The notes under the pieces were generated by a model. The model searched no databases. It saw only the letters and a list, made by a program, of their open reading frames with translations, and had not been told where the DNA came from. This document shows, in pieces, positions 42,568 to 56,803 of a DNA stretch of 64,000 nucleotides (position 1 is its first letter; every line of letters begins with the position of its first letter). Both the position numbers and the translations under genes were made by a program. Source of the stretch: Macrostomum lignano (lineage: Eukaryota); NCBI GenBank assembly GCA_002269645.1, contig NIVC01000888.1:92495-156494 (forward strand), written 5' to 3'.

Positions 42568-45500
42568 TCTCGACATCGGGGTGGCCGCGGCTATCTTGGC
42601 CTGCTATTGCTGGCCGCAGAACTGACCCAGACAGGCCCTGTGCCGCCTGTCACTCTGTCATTCATACTGGGCCAGGCTGCCCTGTACATCGGCCTTGTGC
42701 CCAGCATGGACCTCAGTCTGAGCCAGGTCTGCATTTCCCCAGTTTGGGTCTATTATAGGCGGGACTATCTGCGCCTGTTGCTTGGCTCGTTTTATCACGC
42801 AGACGATTGGCACCTGTACTATAACATGGTGTCGTTCCTGTGGAAGGGCCGCACCCTCGAGCGCATGATGGGCTCGGCCTATTTTCTCATTCTCATTGCC
42901 GTTTTTGCGCCCCTGATCGGCTGCGTTGAAGTGGCGCTCGCCTTTGCCGCCGAGGCCGGCATGGGGAAGTCGCACTACCTTAGCGACTGCTCTGTGGGAT
43001 TCTCCGGTGAGGATGGATATTGATAGATAGATAGATAGATAGATAGATAGATAGATAGATAGATAGATAGATAGATAGATAGATAGATAGATAGATAGAT
43101 AGATAGATAGATAGATAGATATATACAAAGATAGATAGATAGATAGATAGATAGATAGATATATACAAAGATAGATAGATAGATAGATAGATAGATAGAT
43201 AGATAGACAGATAGATAGATAGATAGATAGATAGATACAAAGATAGATAGATAGATAGAAAGATAGGTCGACAGATAGATAGATAGATAGATAGATAGAT
43301 AGATAGATAGATAGATAGATAGATAGATAGATAGATACAAAGATAGATAGATAGATAGATAGATAGATAGATAGATAGATAGACAGATAGATAGATAGAT
43401 AGATAGATAGATAGATAGATAGATATTAGATAGATAGATATGCAGAATTATCACTATCTTATACAATCTCCGCTGCCTCCCCAGGTGTAATATTCGCACT
43501 GAAGGTGCTGACTACTTACAACCTGCCCCCCGGAGTCTCGTACGTGATAGGCTTCCTGCCTGTGCACTCTCGGCTGGCCGTATGGGCCGAGCTCGTCATC
43601 ATCCAGCTGGTTACGCCGAACGCCTCTCTGCTTGGTAAGCTAGAAGAAGATTTTTATTGTCCTGTCTTTCCAGTGCCAGAATCTGCATTCCCGATTGAAA
43701 ATCCGTCGGCACTCCGAGTGCCGATCGGCACTGCCTGTCGGCAGTCAGGGTCGATTTGACTGCCGATCGGCACTCAGTATCGGCACTGAGTGCCGACCGG
43801 GTAGTGCCGACTGTCGGCACTACCCGTCGGTACTGCCCGTCGGCACTGCCCAGTAGTGCCGACATGTCGGCACTACCCGTCGGCACTGCTCGTCGGCACT
43901 GCCCAGTAGTGCCGACATGTCGGCACTACCCGTCGGCACTGCTCGTCGGCACTGCCCAGTAGTGCCGACATGTCGGCACTACCCGTCGGCACTGCTCGTC
44001 GGCACTGCCCAGTAGTGCCGACATGTCGGCACTACCCGTCGGCACTGCCCGTCGGCACTGCCCAGTAGTGCCGACATGTCGGCACTACCCGTCGGCACTG
44101 CCCGTCGGCACTGCCCAGTAGTGCCGACATGTCGGCACTACCCGTCGGCACTGCCCGTCGGCACTGCCCAGTAGTGCCGACATGTCGGCACTACCCGTCG
44201 GCACTGCTCGTCGGCACTGCCCAGTAGTGCCGACATGTCGGCACTACCCGTCGGCACTGCCCGTCGGCACTGCCCAGTAGTGCCGACATGTCGGCACTAC
44301 CCGTCGGCACTGCTCGTCGGCACTACCCGTCGGCACTGTCGATATGTCTTTATCTGTCCCCATGTTCTCTTAATTTTCTATGCGTCTAATTTCATGCTAT
44401 TTTGGCAAAAGTGTCCCACACAAAATAAATCAGGAACTGCATTGGCTAAAGTATCCAACAAAGCCCACGCTTCAATATGCGACGTTTCGATTCATAGCGA
44501 CCCTTCATTGATTTTGTTGCAAACGTTATACGGCATTGGCGGATAGAAGTCGTACAGAGATGTAGCAGATATTGCCATGAATTCAGGTTGTGAGCAAAGG
44601 CTACTACCGACATGACTTTGTAACAGTTTGTACGACTTTGTGGTAGTTCTGTTTGTAGGATTTTGTAGCCCCTTGTAGGACTTTGTGTGACTCTTTGTAG
44701 GACTTTGTGAGACTCTTTGTAGGACTTTGTGAGACTCTTTGTAGGACTTTGTGAGACTTTGTAGGACTTTGTGTGACTCTTCGTAGGACTTTGTGAGACT
44801 TTGACAGTAAGACTTATGCAATACAGCTTTTACATCATACACTTGGGTCCTGAACGGGACTGGGACTGTCTCAGTAGAAAGGGTGTTCTAATGGCATGTA
44901 TAGATCTAGAGCATAGGAGCATGGGGCATAGAGCATGTATTGATGATACGTATGGCTTTAGACAACTTGAAAGACAATCCAACAACATGGATATTTTTAA
45001 AGCTGTAGTTTCGCAATACCATCTGACATGTCTCCCATGCGCATATCCTCTAGCGCATTTCAGCCAGCTGCCAAAAGTCTTCGTGGCAATGGACTTTGCC
45101 AAAAATATCAAAGCGCGCGACCGTAAGAGAAAGCTGGAGGCAGTCTGTCGGTCCGATCGGCGTGCAGCTGCAGCTGCAAGTAAGTGCATGCGTGTGCTGC
45201 AGTTTGGCCAAGCCGCAGCATCTAGTTCGATGCAAGGTGCAGCTAACCATGACGAGGACGATGCCGGTGGTGTTGCCTCATCTGACGGTCCTGCTGAGCT
45301 TTTCAGCTCTAGCTCTGACTGCAGTTCCGACCGCGGCTCCGAACGTGGGTCTGACCGCAGCTCCGATAGAGCCCCTGGCTGCGGATCCGACTGCGGCTCC
45401 GAACGTGGGTCTGACCGCAGCTCCGATGGAGCCTCTGGCCGCGGATCCGACTGCGGCTCCGAACGTGGGTCTGACCGCAGCTTCGATAGAGCCCCTGGCC

Positions 45501-54500: not shown

Positions 54501-56803
54501 ACGGCAGCGGCACTGGCCCCAGCAGCGGCACTGGCAAGGGCAGCGGCACTGGCAAGGGCAGCGGCACTGGCCCCAGCAGCGGCACTGGCCCCAGCAGCGG
54601 CACTGGCAAGGGCAGCGGCACTGGCAACGGCAGCGGCACTGGCCCCAGCAGCGGCACTGGCAAGGGCAGCGGCACTGGCAACGGCAGCGGCACTGGCCCC
54701 AGCAGCGGCAGTGGCCCCAGCAGCGGCACTGGCAACGGCAGCGGCACTGGCCCCAGCAGCGACACGGCCCATGTCGACGGCGACAAGGGCGACAGCGATC
54801 TAGGGGCCTAAGTCGGGGTCTAGGACGCGGGGATTGTATGTTTAATTAAAGTATTGAAGTATAATTCCTAGCACAGTTGGGGGACCACGTAACGTCCACG
54901 ATGCCATTGATAGACCCTTGAAGAAAAAAGTATTATATAGCCTTAGTTTCCTTACTCTTCTAGCATTACTCTAAATGCGTATAGCATTATAGCTAAGAAG
55001 TTAGTTTTAAGCTTTTACGTTTAAGTTTTAAGTTTTAAGTTTTGAGCATAAGTTTGCACCTGCTTATACCGTAATGACCACCAAAGACCCGCTTACATTT
55101 CCGATGCGAGCATCCACCTCAAACCCCACCCCACCTCAGACATTTATGGGAGTCGGATGGTATTTGGAGGTCCCGCTATAAGTGATTAGTAATATAAGTA
55201 GCAAAGTATAACGTAGGTCCAGTTACTTCCAGAAGTAGGTAGACGCTAGCTGTAGTAGTAGAAGTAGTAGTTGTAGTAGCAAGCGAAGGGGCAGCATTTT
55301 ATTAAATTGTGTGTCATTTCCTTTTAACAGAACACATAGCACGCGTACGTGTGCCCAAAATCCGAGTCTCTCTGCAGGGTTCAGTTTCTGTTTTATTATT
55401 TGTTTATTTTTATACGTGAATAATTCGTTGCCTACCATCCCCACGCAACAGTTGTCGATTGGCACCATTTAATTCCCTTCTGCTTTCGCCTCGGTCAACT
55501 GTCGAGCCTTTACAAGGCTAGTCATCCAAATAAATGGGTAATATTTATACATGTATCTACTTTTGGCCACCATCTATGTGACAATTACACTGTTCTGTCC
55601 ATATTTCCTGCATTGCCTGCCACTTCTTTATGGAACGCATGCTCGATAGGGGATACATGTACGTGGTACGTGTACGGTGATTCAGTGATGCTGGAGTTAA
55701 ATTGCTGTCTCACGTCCACAGGTCTAATTTTATTTTAATATAATTTTGCCATTACACTAATAACGTAATTAACTATTCCATTGATTCACGACACAAAATG
55801 CCTCCGATATATGGGAGCCGACACGAGGGCCAATGAGTGCCAATGTGAGTACCGATATGAGGGTTGACATGAGTGCCGATGGGAGTACCGATATACGGGC
55901 CTACGGGCCTACGTGCCGACAGGGGTGCCGATTTAGTGCCGATGGGAGTATCGATGAGTGCCGATTTGAGTGCCGATATGAGTGCCGATTTAGTGCCGAC
56001 GGGAGTGTCGATGAGTGCCGATTTGAGTGCCGACGGGAGTGCCGACGGGAGTGTCGATGAGTGCCGATGTGAGTGCCGACGGGAGTGCCGACATGAGTGC
56101 CGACGGGAGTGCCGACGGGAGTGCCGACGGGAGTGCCGACGGGAGTGCCGACATGAGTGCCGATGGGAGTGCCGATGGGAGTGCCGACATGAGTGCCGAC
56201 GGGAGTGTCGACATGAGTGCCGACGGCGAATGGGCGAGGGTGCGGCGAAGGCTCTAGGTCAGTGCCGACGGCGAGTGCCGATGTTCAGTACCGACAGTAC
56301 CGACCGTCGGTGCCGATATGAGCCACTTTACCGGACACTCTGAGTGCCGACAGACCAGTGCCGATCCGTCGGCAGTCAGTGCCGATGGGGCCCCCGATTT
56401 TCAATCGGGATTGATGTCTGTGTATCAAAAGATAAAACGTATGATTGTGTAACAAAATGTTTAGCATAGGGATAAAATAGATTCATAAAATCCGTGACTT
56501 TTAGGCCACCTCGCCGGCATTCTGGTTGGCCTGGCCTACGTCAAGGGCCCCCTCCGACTCATCATGGAGCCGCTCTGTCTGAGCATTCTTGGCGGCAATC
56601 GGACTCGGTTTTATCGGCCCTGGGGCTGGGGCTGGGCCGGTGGCAGCAGCAGTCGCGAGGAGCGACGAGCCGACCGGAGCTTCCAGGACGAGCCGCCGCC
56701 TCCGCCGCCGCCAACTCGGCGTTCGAATTCGGCAACGGCGGTGTCGGATGAGGAGCTGCGGCAGAGGCGGCTGGCTCGATTCGGTCAGACTGCGGTTCAA
56801 TGA
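42568..56803 (+). CDS. RHBDD1: Rhomboid intramembrane protease RHBDD1/RHBDL4 (first coding exon not located)
   Basis: Exons 42568-43006, 43485-43634 and 56505-56803, joined in phase 1. Motifs HADDWHLYYNM.S.LWKG..LE, catalytic GFSG, catalytic GHLAG, and C-terminal EELRQRRLARF (VCP-binding-motif-like). Confidence 0.93.
43022..43440. repeat. (GATA)n microsatellite in an RHBDD1 intron
   Basis: Fills intron 43007-43484. Confidence 0.98.
43704..44342. repeat. Left subterminal repeat array (53-bp units of the GTCGGCACT motif)
   Basis: Nine 53-bp-spaced copies of the palindrome GTAGTGCCGACATGTCGGCACTAC (about 43853-44300), plus direct motif copies. Confidence 0.95.
45089..48711 (+). CDS. CMC/EnSpm-type DDE transposase (one apparent frameshift near 46600-46650)
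   Basis: Exons about 45089-45859 (possible 39-nt in-frame intron 45180-45218), 46046-47886 and 48148-48711. Motifs: CPRC...CEPC zinc finger, VNIDA (D), CPVYLTVNE, LDAP (D), GCDHC, HFRGHE, YNAHQVCEHL (HxxxxH), GPVW, LFES (E). ORFs 46229-46648 and 46651-47925 are in different frames. Confidence 0.85.
45330..45810. repeat. 60-bp coding tandem repeat in the transposase N-terminus
   Basis: About 8 units encoding SSDGASGRGSDCGSERGSDR. Confidence 0.93.
49406..51551 (+). CDS. F-box/leucine-rich-repeat protein (FBXL-like) inside the transposon, about 557 aa
   Basis: Exons 49406-49990, 50144-50288 (GC donor GCATGT), 50440-50904 and 51073-51551 total 1674 nt in frame. F-box IDVLPSELLMQVLQHL...LVCAQVCRRWADV; AMN1-type LRRs LRELSLAEC, LQSLSLVHC, LQCLHLLDC..VT, LELTLANC. 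Confidence 0.88.
52515..54811 (+). CDS. Transposon accessory protein: coiled coil + BEN-like domain + Gly/Ser-rich tail
   Basis: Exons 52515-53779 and 54025-54811 (phase 2). Coiled coil LKTRLRQMQDLQ...LEQLG; BEN-like LLRLLCREVFTEEEQLNCSFTG...LPPIPEAKREAIIAFL; basic NLS-like stretches; GSGTGPSSGTGN repeats. Confidence 0.7.
55830..56395. repeat. Right subterminal repeat array (12-bp GAGTGCCGACGG / GAGTGCCGACAT)
   Basis: Dozens of AGTGCCGA(C/T) motifs, the reverse complement of the left-end motif. Confidence 0.95.

Follow-up and report, generated by a model that had tools for sequence, protein, structure and literature searches.

Structure of the locus

The DNA analysed here is a stretch of 64,000 nucleotides (hereafter the window) on contig C888 of the flatworm Macrostomum lignano, and it holds one copy of a DNA transposon of 12,720 bp (window positions 43690-56409) that encodes a transposase, an F-box/leucine-rich repeat (LRR) protein and a third protein with a coiled coil and a BEN-like fold (gene 3). 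The F-box/LRR gene, which is shared with a second and diverged transposon family of the same genome, is the main subject of this study. All three genes are on the + strand, spliced and closely spaced, and their introns are of the GT-AG type with the exception of one GC-AG intron after F-box exon 2 in the GenBank model. The original prediction, made from the letters of the window alone, had described a CACTA/CMC transposon with perfect 14-bp terminal inverted repeats (TIRs), an ATT target-site duplication (TSD), subterminal arrays and three co-oriented spliced genes (DDE transposase, F-box/LRR, coiled-coil/BEN); the ends, arrays and gene layout were all recovered and are listed below.

43687..43689, left TSD ATT; a single ATT stands at the empty site in the homeologs C1326 and C142
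43690..43703, + strand, left TIR CCCGATTGAAAATC; 8 sites in the genome share the first 24 bases exactly
43704..44340, left subterminal array; GTGCCGA core 46 times (34 as TCGGCAC)
45089..48711, + strand, transposase gene; exons 45089-45859, 46046-47886 and 48148-48711; 1038 amino acids in intact copies
49373..51551, + strand, F-box/LRR gene; exons 49373-49990, 50144-50288, 50440-50904 and 51073-51551; 568 amino acids (P0001)
52515..54811, + strand, gene 3; exons 52515-53779 and 54025-54811; 683 amino acids
55833..56395, right subterminal array; GTGCCGA 30 times in a single orientation, mostly at 12-bp spacing
56396..56409, - strand, right TIR GATTTTCAATCGGG; exact reverse complement of the left TIR CCCGATTGAAAATC over 14 bp
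56410..56412, right TSD ATT, matching the left ATT

The window contains 82 GTGCCGA/TCGGCAC heptamers. The element accounts for 78 of them: 46 lie no more than 650 bp from the left end and 30, all of them GTGCCGA, no more than 630 bp from the right end. The left array holds a 53-bp unit repeated ten times (43801-44328), and the AGTGCCGA arrays at both ends are mutually inverted, which is an En/Spm-type layout. The termini of the window family (CCCGATTG...) and of the second family (CCCGGTTA...) start with CCC and are neither CACTA nor CA..TG.

Copies in the genome and empty sites

The Mlig_3_7 assembly (764 Mb, 5269 contigs, PacBio-based) was used for the genome searches. A genome-wide search with the end pattern located left ends at 8 places and right ends at 7; the reversed control pattern had 0 matches. 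At least nine copies were recognized, with identities of 98-99.9%. Five of them are complete, lie in unrelated flanks and are each bordered by a matching 3-bp TSD.

C888 (window), 12,720 bp, TSD ATT
C212, 12,710 bp, TSD ATC
C31, 9,320 bp, TSD TTA
C930, 14,292 bp, TSD CAG
C1499, 14,515 bp, TSD TTA

When the window flanks are joined with one ATT, the result is found as uninterrupted sequence at the homeologous contigs C1326 (97% identical) and C142 (94%), whose empty sites read ...AATCTGCATTGATGTCTG... TSDs of different sequence, empty homeologs and near-identical copies speak for mobility; the element is a real, recently mobile transposon, very young and probably still active by cut-and-paste.

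Transposase and superfamily placement

Both transposase introns are confirmed by GenBank protein P0002, which, like the F-box protein P0001, goes back to an annotation guided by RNA-seq, with repeat-annotated transcripts left out; the origin of these two models counts as evidence of expression for both genes. The N-terminal part contains 20-amino-acid acidic/Ser repeats (60-bp units, 45326-45811), and a CxxC...CxxC zinc ribbon is encoded at 46445-46513. The 60-bp units, like the 18-bp units of gene 3, vary in number between element copies. Conserved columns from an alignment of 40 homologs were mapped to the window as follows.

46735..47829, + strand, catalytic core
46735-46737, + strand, catalytic D of NIDAF (D376), nearly invariant
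47005-47007, + strand, catalytic D of VLDAPQ (D466), invariant
47062-47073, + strand, C(2)C of CDHC (C485, C488), invariant
47752-47769, + strand, H(4)H (H715, H720), invariant
47827-47829, + strand, catalytic E of LFESL (E740), invariant

The transposase thus carries the D..D..C(2)C..H(4)H..E signature of the CMC (CACTA/EnSpm-Mirage-Chapaev) superfamily. A HMMER search gave 3105 homologs at E<=0.001, with named examples from a hemichordate, ticks, a parasitoid wasp and a fish. The transposases of the window family and of the second family have no direct Pfam match, Transposase_21 included, even at E<=10; Transposase_21 (tnp2) was matched by 29 of the 40 HMMER homologs (best 1.6e-14), and others matched DUF1258, Plavaka or DUF4218. 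The TSD is 3 bp in both families, as for CMC elements (2-3 bp). Since the catalytic signature, the Transposase_21-matching homologs, the 3-bp TSDs and the inverted subterminal arrays agree, the element is assigned on sequence grounds to the CMC superfamily, animal 'TRC' type. The CCC termini are an objection to the name 'CACTA' and none to the placement in CMC, so that the second half of the predicted label stood and the first did not. Harbinger, or another superfamily with a 3-bp TSD, was considered and ruled out by the transposase signature and homologs.

A genome-wide search with the transposase gave 621 candidate places, of which 60 were scored. Among these 60 were several other families with 34-46% identity, many of them as single long open reading frames and several with near-identical copies, so that the M. 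lignano genome appears to hold a diverse set of CMC elements with recent activity. At the loci of the more distant homologs from the hemichordate and the wasp, no F-box or BEN gene adjoins the transposase.

The F-box/LRR gene and its protein

The first two junctions of the F-box gene are confirmed by GenBank protein P0001. Besides the GC donor of the GenBank model, exon 2 has an alternative GT donor 54 bp upstream, which ends the exon at 50234 and gives a protein of 550 amino acids. Both donors are in frame, and the four in-phase exons without a stop that had been reported for this gene are confirmed for either length (568 or 550 amino acids).

~49439-49570, + strand, F-box motif; Pfam F-box-like, 1.2e-12 to 4e-13

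The motif scores above the Pfam gathering cut-offs for both PF12937 (47.8-49.3 bits, cut-off 24.3) and PF00646 (37-39.5 bits, cut-off 20.5), and in a PDB sequence search the F-box and the first repeats align to FBXL2 and SKP2. An AlphaFold2 model of the protein (pLDDT 79.8, pTM 0.72) has about 17 strand-helix units, and its best fold matches are FBXL2-SKP1, MAX2/D3, TIR1, COI1, FBXL17 and FBXL3 (E 9e-15 to 4e-10), receptors that were nearly all solved together with SKP1 or ASK1. A word-indexed protein search with the F-box protein and the transposase matched only M. lignano's own GenBank proteins, and looking up the GenBank F-box protein by exact match gave no contig.

Retention of the F-box gene across copies and in a second family

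The F-box gene was found in 8 of the 9 copies, and 7 of these code for one and the same protein; the gene of C2297 has homopolymer indels. That the window copy alone would have the gene, which the original prediction had named as a finding against it, is thereby rejected; C31 has lost the gene. Across copies the 2.18-kb gene differs by one substitution and one indel, both intronic, with 0 substitutions in the coding sequence; BEN exon 1 shows 1 substitution, and copies of F-box exon 1 in the second family differ at 1 base. A nested F-box insertion with its own TIR pair and TSD was rejected as a candidate: only one internal right-TIR-like match (12/14) was found, in the long copies, together with no left end and no inner duplication.

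At C227, C446 and C486, which hold the nearest genomic paralogs of the F-box gene, the paralog lies between an upstream transposase homolog and a downstream gene-3 homolog, all three on one strand, and the order transposase, F-box, BEN of this second family (family 2) is that of the window family. The C227 element (G000:C227:313588-327939; L063, L030, L064) is 14,352 bp long, with the TIR CCCGGTTAAAAAAA and the TSD GTA, and is inserted in a satellite of 31-bp units; its 12-bp subterminal repeats are inverted, being CGACCGTT on the left and AACGGTCG on the right. Family-2 ends were found via the tandem arrays, a first inverted-repeat search having given microsatellite matches only. They occur 21 times in the genome, in 3 long copies and 7 short, internally deleted non-autonomous copies of 0.5-3.6 kb among others, and the 18 further ends lie on C31, C42, C446, C486, C543, C630, C1846, C3594, C4692 and C4840.

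The family-2 transposase is about 45% identical to that of the window (43-65% for the C227 transposase homolog), and the gene-3 homologs at C227, C446 and C486 are 28-29% identical to gene 3. The family-2 F-box frame is open, its protein is 31-39% identical to the window protein, and its three conserved coding blocks align with those of the window gene. Without selection, a reading frame of some 550 codons would not remain open over this distance; neutral evolution of the gene, which the original prediction had named as a finding that would count against it, does not fit a frame and an exon layout that persist at 31-39% identity. In a tree of F-box exon 1, the transposon-borne genes form one clade (support 93/88) apart from host-like paralogs, and in a tree of transposases the window and family-2 sequences fall in a trio (95/93) nested in a clade (100/100) made up of M. 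lignano and metagenome sequences. Being present in most copies as well as in a second family, the F-box gene belongs to the element and is no peculiarity of one copy, and the recent capture that had been envisaged is unlikely, as the gene predates the split of two families with about 45% transposase identity.

Gene 3, a coiled-coil/BEN partner of the transposase

The product of gene 3 comprises a conserved N-terminal 'FWIV' region, a coiled coil, a BEN-fold domain, basic stretches resembling nuclear localization signals and GSGTGN repeats.

~53427-54050, + strand, BEN-fold domain, spanning the intron; AlphaFold2 model and PDB fold matches
54342-54751, + strand, GSGTGN repeats of the gene-3 C-terminus; 18-bp units in variable number

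A genome search with the gene-3 protein gave homologs with 24-37% identity, and their C-terminal domains have the common motif LLR.L..AVFT.EEL..CSYTGR...KK.AI..FL. Pfam BEN was matched by 3 of 6 paralogous domains, weakly (best E 0.0045) and below the curated threshold, and neither gene 3 as a single sequence nor its profile had a PDB sequence match to any BEN-domain structure. An AlphaFold2 model of the domain, built on the paralog alignment, reached pLDDT 91.5 and pTM 0.82, and each of the 12 PDB structures nearest to it in fold is a DNA-bound BEN domain (Bsg25A, Insv, BEND6, NACC1 and BANP; probability 0.99-0.38, TM 0.42-0.60). A BEN fold is accepted for gene 3 from the weak paralog matches and the fold comparison. 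The earlier 'BEN-domain gene' therefore holds as regards the coiled coil and the BEN fold, and fails as regards Pfam detection in the window protein itself.

At C2013, C2422, C1267, C1666 and C2504, a gene-3 homolog closely follows a transposase homolog in the same orientation. Two metagenome contigs, L061 (Tara marine metagenome ERR1726684, 10.2 kb) and L062 (JGI 3300040801, 6.4 kb), encode transposases 33-34% identical to those of the window family. On both contigs the transposase is directly followed by a gene-3-like protein with an FWIV region, a coiled coil and a BEN-like C-terminus, and no F-box gene is present on the 10.2 kb of L061 or the 6.4 kb of L062. Because such homologs follow transposases at many M. 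lignano loci and on two metagenome contigs, gene 3 is, judged by gene order, the regular core partner of this transposase lineage, and because the metagenome relatives hold transposase and BEN gene alone, the F-box gene is seen as a retained addition. The BEN protein would have a TnpA-like role, in which it binds the 12-bp-spaced subterminal repeats (presumably AGTGCCGA in the window family and CGACCGTT in the sister family) and brings the ends together for the transposase.

Proposed role of the F-box protein

The explanation that we consider best overall, and hold with moderate confidence, is that of a young CMC transposon with a core of transposase and BEN protein, in which an F-box gene has been kept for the benefit of the element through the SKP1-CUL1-F-box (SCF) ubiquitin ligase. 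Since two long-diverged transposon families keep the gene, the element probably exploits the SCF ligase of its host. Host SKP1-CUL1 would be the docking site of the F-box, and the solenoid of about 17 LRR units would offer up a protein to be ubiquitinated, from which the element would benefit. The most attractive candidate for the substrate would be a host factor that restrains the element. The more specific proposal, that this transposon lineage has its own SCF receptor to mark such a restraining host protein for degradation (for instance a PIWI/PIWI-interacting RNA factor, a chromatin-silencing factor or a member of the host's own expanded F-box surveillance family), is put forward tentatively, with the odds against it; if true, it would be a transposon counterpart of the viral F-box suppressors of silencing.

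Several observations weigh against retention for the element's benefit and against parts of the account built around it. Copies are too alike for the ratio of non-synonymous to synonymous substitution within the family to carry information, and between families, whose proteins are 31-39% identical, saturation of synonymous sites is probable. C31, which is without the F-box gene, yet has a clean TSD, and the gene is therefore not needed in cis. SKP1 binding, a substrate and an effect on transposition are predictions. For gene 3, the window protein has no match to Pfam BEN (PF10523) at E<=10, the Foldseek E-values for the BEN fold are weak (>=0.036), and binding of the subterminal repeats is something that we infer by analogy with TnpA. 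The exon-1 tree is unrooted, has long branches and is provisional. The transposases closest by identity among the 60 places scored of 621 (C3241 and C282, 46%) have no F-box match nearby, so that a single gain of the gene implies losses, or else the transposase tree is unresolved. The direction of transfer, from host to element or the reverse, may be either.

The first alternative to be weighed is that the F-box gene is passenger cargo, a host gene captured by transduplication that does the element no service, its frame being open from youth or from selection at the level of the host. The lack of coding substitutions among the copies fits this, since no signal of selection can be read within the family, as do the movement of C31 and of the short family-2 derivatives without the gene and the host paralogs in tandem clusters, which could be its source. 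Such cargo would not be expected, however, at the same position, in the same orientation and with the same exon layout in families whose transposases are about 45% identical, nor would a neutral frame of 550 codons be expected to last to the point at which the proteins are 31-39% identical yet open; in addition, the transposon-borne genes make up one clade and their F-box motif is still canonical. Given this retention across families, a pure passenger role is unlikely.

Another possibility is that the ligase is directed at the element itself, the F-box protein targeting its own transposase or BEN protein and thereby limiting dose or cell range, or serving as an antidote-like partner. Selfish elements in which F-box proteins degrade a linked product via SCF provide a precedent (PMC12680543), the three genes are co-oriented and closely spaced, and the long, variable, low-complexity acidic/Ser and Gly/Ser repeats of the transposase and BEN protein could be degrons. 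Nothing favours an element-encoded substrate over one of the host, though, and related elements with transposase and BEN gene only manage without such control; we judge self-targeting to be improbable.

Origin of the F-box gene

On the preferred account of a gene kept for the element's benefit, the F-box gene would have been taken up once, as intron-bearing genomic DNA, at a time when the two families had not yet diverged, and then kept because it was helpful to the element; its most likely source would be the expanded FBXL-like family of the host. Paralog neighbourhoods were inferred from match coordinates and small stretches of sequence. Tandem clusters of FBXL-like genes were observed on C578 (465-490 kb), C1936 (168-193 kb), C1389 (216-244 kb), C319 (651-675 kb), C5019, C4222 and C1572, and single host-like F-box genes on C140 and C1150. 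The clustered genes, which are about 4 kb apart and 29-41% identical to the transposon F-box protein, look like a rapidly expanding host F-box family. Host-like paralogs such as that of C140 have the same three coding blocks, which fits uptake as genomic DNA and not as a retrocopy.

The opposite course, in which the F-box family arose in transposons or was spread by them and the host paralogs are domesticated or decayed, would agree with a large and rapidly diversifying family and with an unrooted tree in which a single branch parts the transposon-borne genes from the clustered ones. It is quite improbable, because among the matches listed there was no transposase or gene-3 match on the contigs of the clustered paralogs, no transposase lies in the 5.8 kb upstream of the C140 paralog, and the metagenome relatives are without an F-box gene, so that the F-box-less transposon looks ancestral.

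Internal deletions, frameshifts and state of the copies

The copies differ by internal deletions and by a frameshift in the transposase gene, which map to the window as follows.

46615..46617, + strand, transposase frameshift; 1-bp loss in a C-run, CCC in the window and CCCC in 8 of 8 other copies
48925..48930, junction of internal deletion 1; longer copies have 1.0-1.3 kb more after the transposase gene
52031..52041, junction of internal deletion 2; longer copies have about 0.77 kb more after the F-box gene

In the long copies, such as C1499, the segment of deletion 1 contains a diverged transposase fragment (LRELKKFRGHESEIWLIAYAPIVLQD) and a (GA)n run, and that of deletion 2 the lone right-TIR-like sequence AAATTTCAATCGGG (12/14 match). 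The diverged fragment and the lone TIR-like match may be traces of the acquisition of the F-box segment from a related element. The window copy and C212 are 99.8% identical to each other and both are without these two segments; they represent an internally deleted form that itself transposed. C31 has lost the entire F-box gene along with the final part of the transposase gene.

Intact transposase frames of 1038 amino acids are present in C930, C772 and C1686; C31 has intact exons 1-2 and no last exon, and C2297 has an in-frame deletion of 3 bp. All frameshifts in the family are single-base losses, mainly within G or C runs, and because the assembly is PacBio-based, that of the window copy, like the others, may be an assembly error. 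If it is real, the window copy depends on transposase supplied by intact copies, whereas both its F-box gene and its BEN gene are undamaged.

The flanks of C2297 do not match (CAG left, TCA right), the left flank of C1686 ends in TCA and the right flank of C2877 starts with CAG, a pattern that suggests either that two copies were joined as a chimera in the assembly or that copies have recombined with each other. That the copies as a whole are assembly duplications, or a host gene cluster flanked by chance inverted repeats, has next to no probability: the Mlig_3_7 assembly is redundant, C930 and C772 have a flank in common and the C2297 flanks are mismatched, but five copies lie in unrelated flanks with their own 3-bp TSDs, the exact empty site is present at two homeologs and the reversed control pattern gave 0 matches.

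Comparison with known systems

Maize En/Spm and the plant EnSpm elements resemble the window element in the 3-bp TSD, the short TIRs and the dense, oppositely oriented subterminal arrays. En/Spm also has a tnp2-type DDE transposase (TnpD), to which that of the window element is linked by transitive homology, and internally deleted non-autonomous derivatives, and its second protein is TnpA, while the second protein of the window element is expected, by analogy, to bind the subterminal repeats. The window element differs in its CCC termini, the absence of a direct Transposase_21 match and the presence of an F-box/LRR gene; its second protein is of the coiled-coil/BEN kind, with no similarity to TnpA detected; and its genes appear, from gene models, to be separate units, in contrast to the single alternatively spliced transcript of En/Spm. 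SmTRC1 of Schistosoma and its insect relatives have CCC termini (DeMarco et al. 2006, PMC1636069), and SmTRC1 has a Transposase_21 domain, with no F-box or BEN gene mentioned in the abstract of that paper (PMC1636069). By description, SmTRC1 and the other animal and fungal 'TRC' elements are like the window element in CCC TIRs, flanking direct repeats, multi-exon structure and, via homologs in the case of the window element, a relation to Transposase_21, and SmTRC1 also in its flatworm host (PMC1636069).

VANDAL21, a Mutator-like element, encodes the anti-silencing protein VANC, which was probably derived from a captured host protein, and is likewise a DNA transposon that keeps an extra gene, VANC acting on host control (PMC13547354). 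Unlike the predicted function here, VANC is a sequence-specific DNA-binding factor and not a ubiquitin-ligase adaptor, and VANDAL21 belongs to another superfamily. The window protein itself has the architecture of FBXL2, SKP2, FBXL17, TIR1, COI1 and MAX2/D3, namely an N-terminal F-box followed by a cysteine-containing LRR solenoid; it differs from these receptors in being transposon-encoded, with 13-20% identity over the fold alignments and no orthology to a named FBXL.

F-box proteins are also encoded by other selfish agents, among them polerovirus P0, nanovirus Clink and the poxvirus ankyrin/PRANC proteins. The toxin-antidote elements of C. tropicalis have KSS F-box antidotes, recruited from an F-box family of the host that is in rapid expansion (PMC12680543), and an expanded host F-box family is a point of likeness with M. 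lignano. In these elements and viruses, as in the window element, a selfish agent encodes an F-box protein for the host SCF; in contrast to the viruses and to gene-drive loci that do not transpose, the F-box gene of the window rides in a cut-and-paste transposon.

DNA transposons are usually thought to hold a transposase and at most a DNA-binding helper, and few counter-defence genes are known, VANC of the plant Mutator-like elements being one. In a literature search, no F-box or BEN gene was described within an animal DNA transposon, Repbase being outside that search and a prior entry there possible; the words Macrostomum, flatworm and CMC do not appear in a 2025 paper that deals with F-box genes and transposable elements, and an atlas of Arabidopsis transposon products makes no mention of F-box. 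What appears to be new is a conserved F-box accessory gene in a CMC transposon, together with a putative TnpA-like partner of the BEN type. An F-box/LRR gene that is intact and in place despite a transposase identity of about 45% suggests that cut-and-paste elements can recruit the host ubiquitin system. RNA interference and transgenesis exist for M. lignano, and with an apparently active element they make the F-box proposal directly testable; the substrate could point to a flatworm factor of transposon control. The coiled-coil/BEN protein appears to be a standard partner in this animal CMC lineage, including marine metagenome contigs, which would give BEN domains a role in transposons and suggests a possible source of cellular BEN proteins.

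Host insertion site and neighbouring features

The element is inserted, in sense orientation, 50 bp into an intron of about 140 bp (length taken from the empty homeologs) of a gene with a Rhomboid domain (Pfam 1.2e-10). The interrupted gene occupies window positions 42403-43640 and continues from about 56497, and its preceding intron contains a (GATA)105 microsatellite at 43022-43440. Upstream of the rhomboid gene, two exons of a PTHB1/BBS9-like gene are located on the minus strand at 37928-39793 (Pfam PHTB1_N, 1e-69 and 5e-23), and the region between these two genes (40001-42000) is AT-rich, with a GC content of 0.29.

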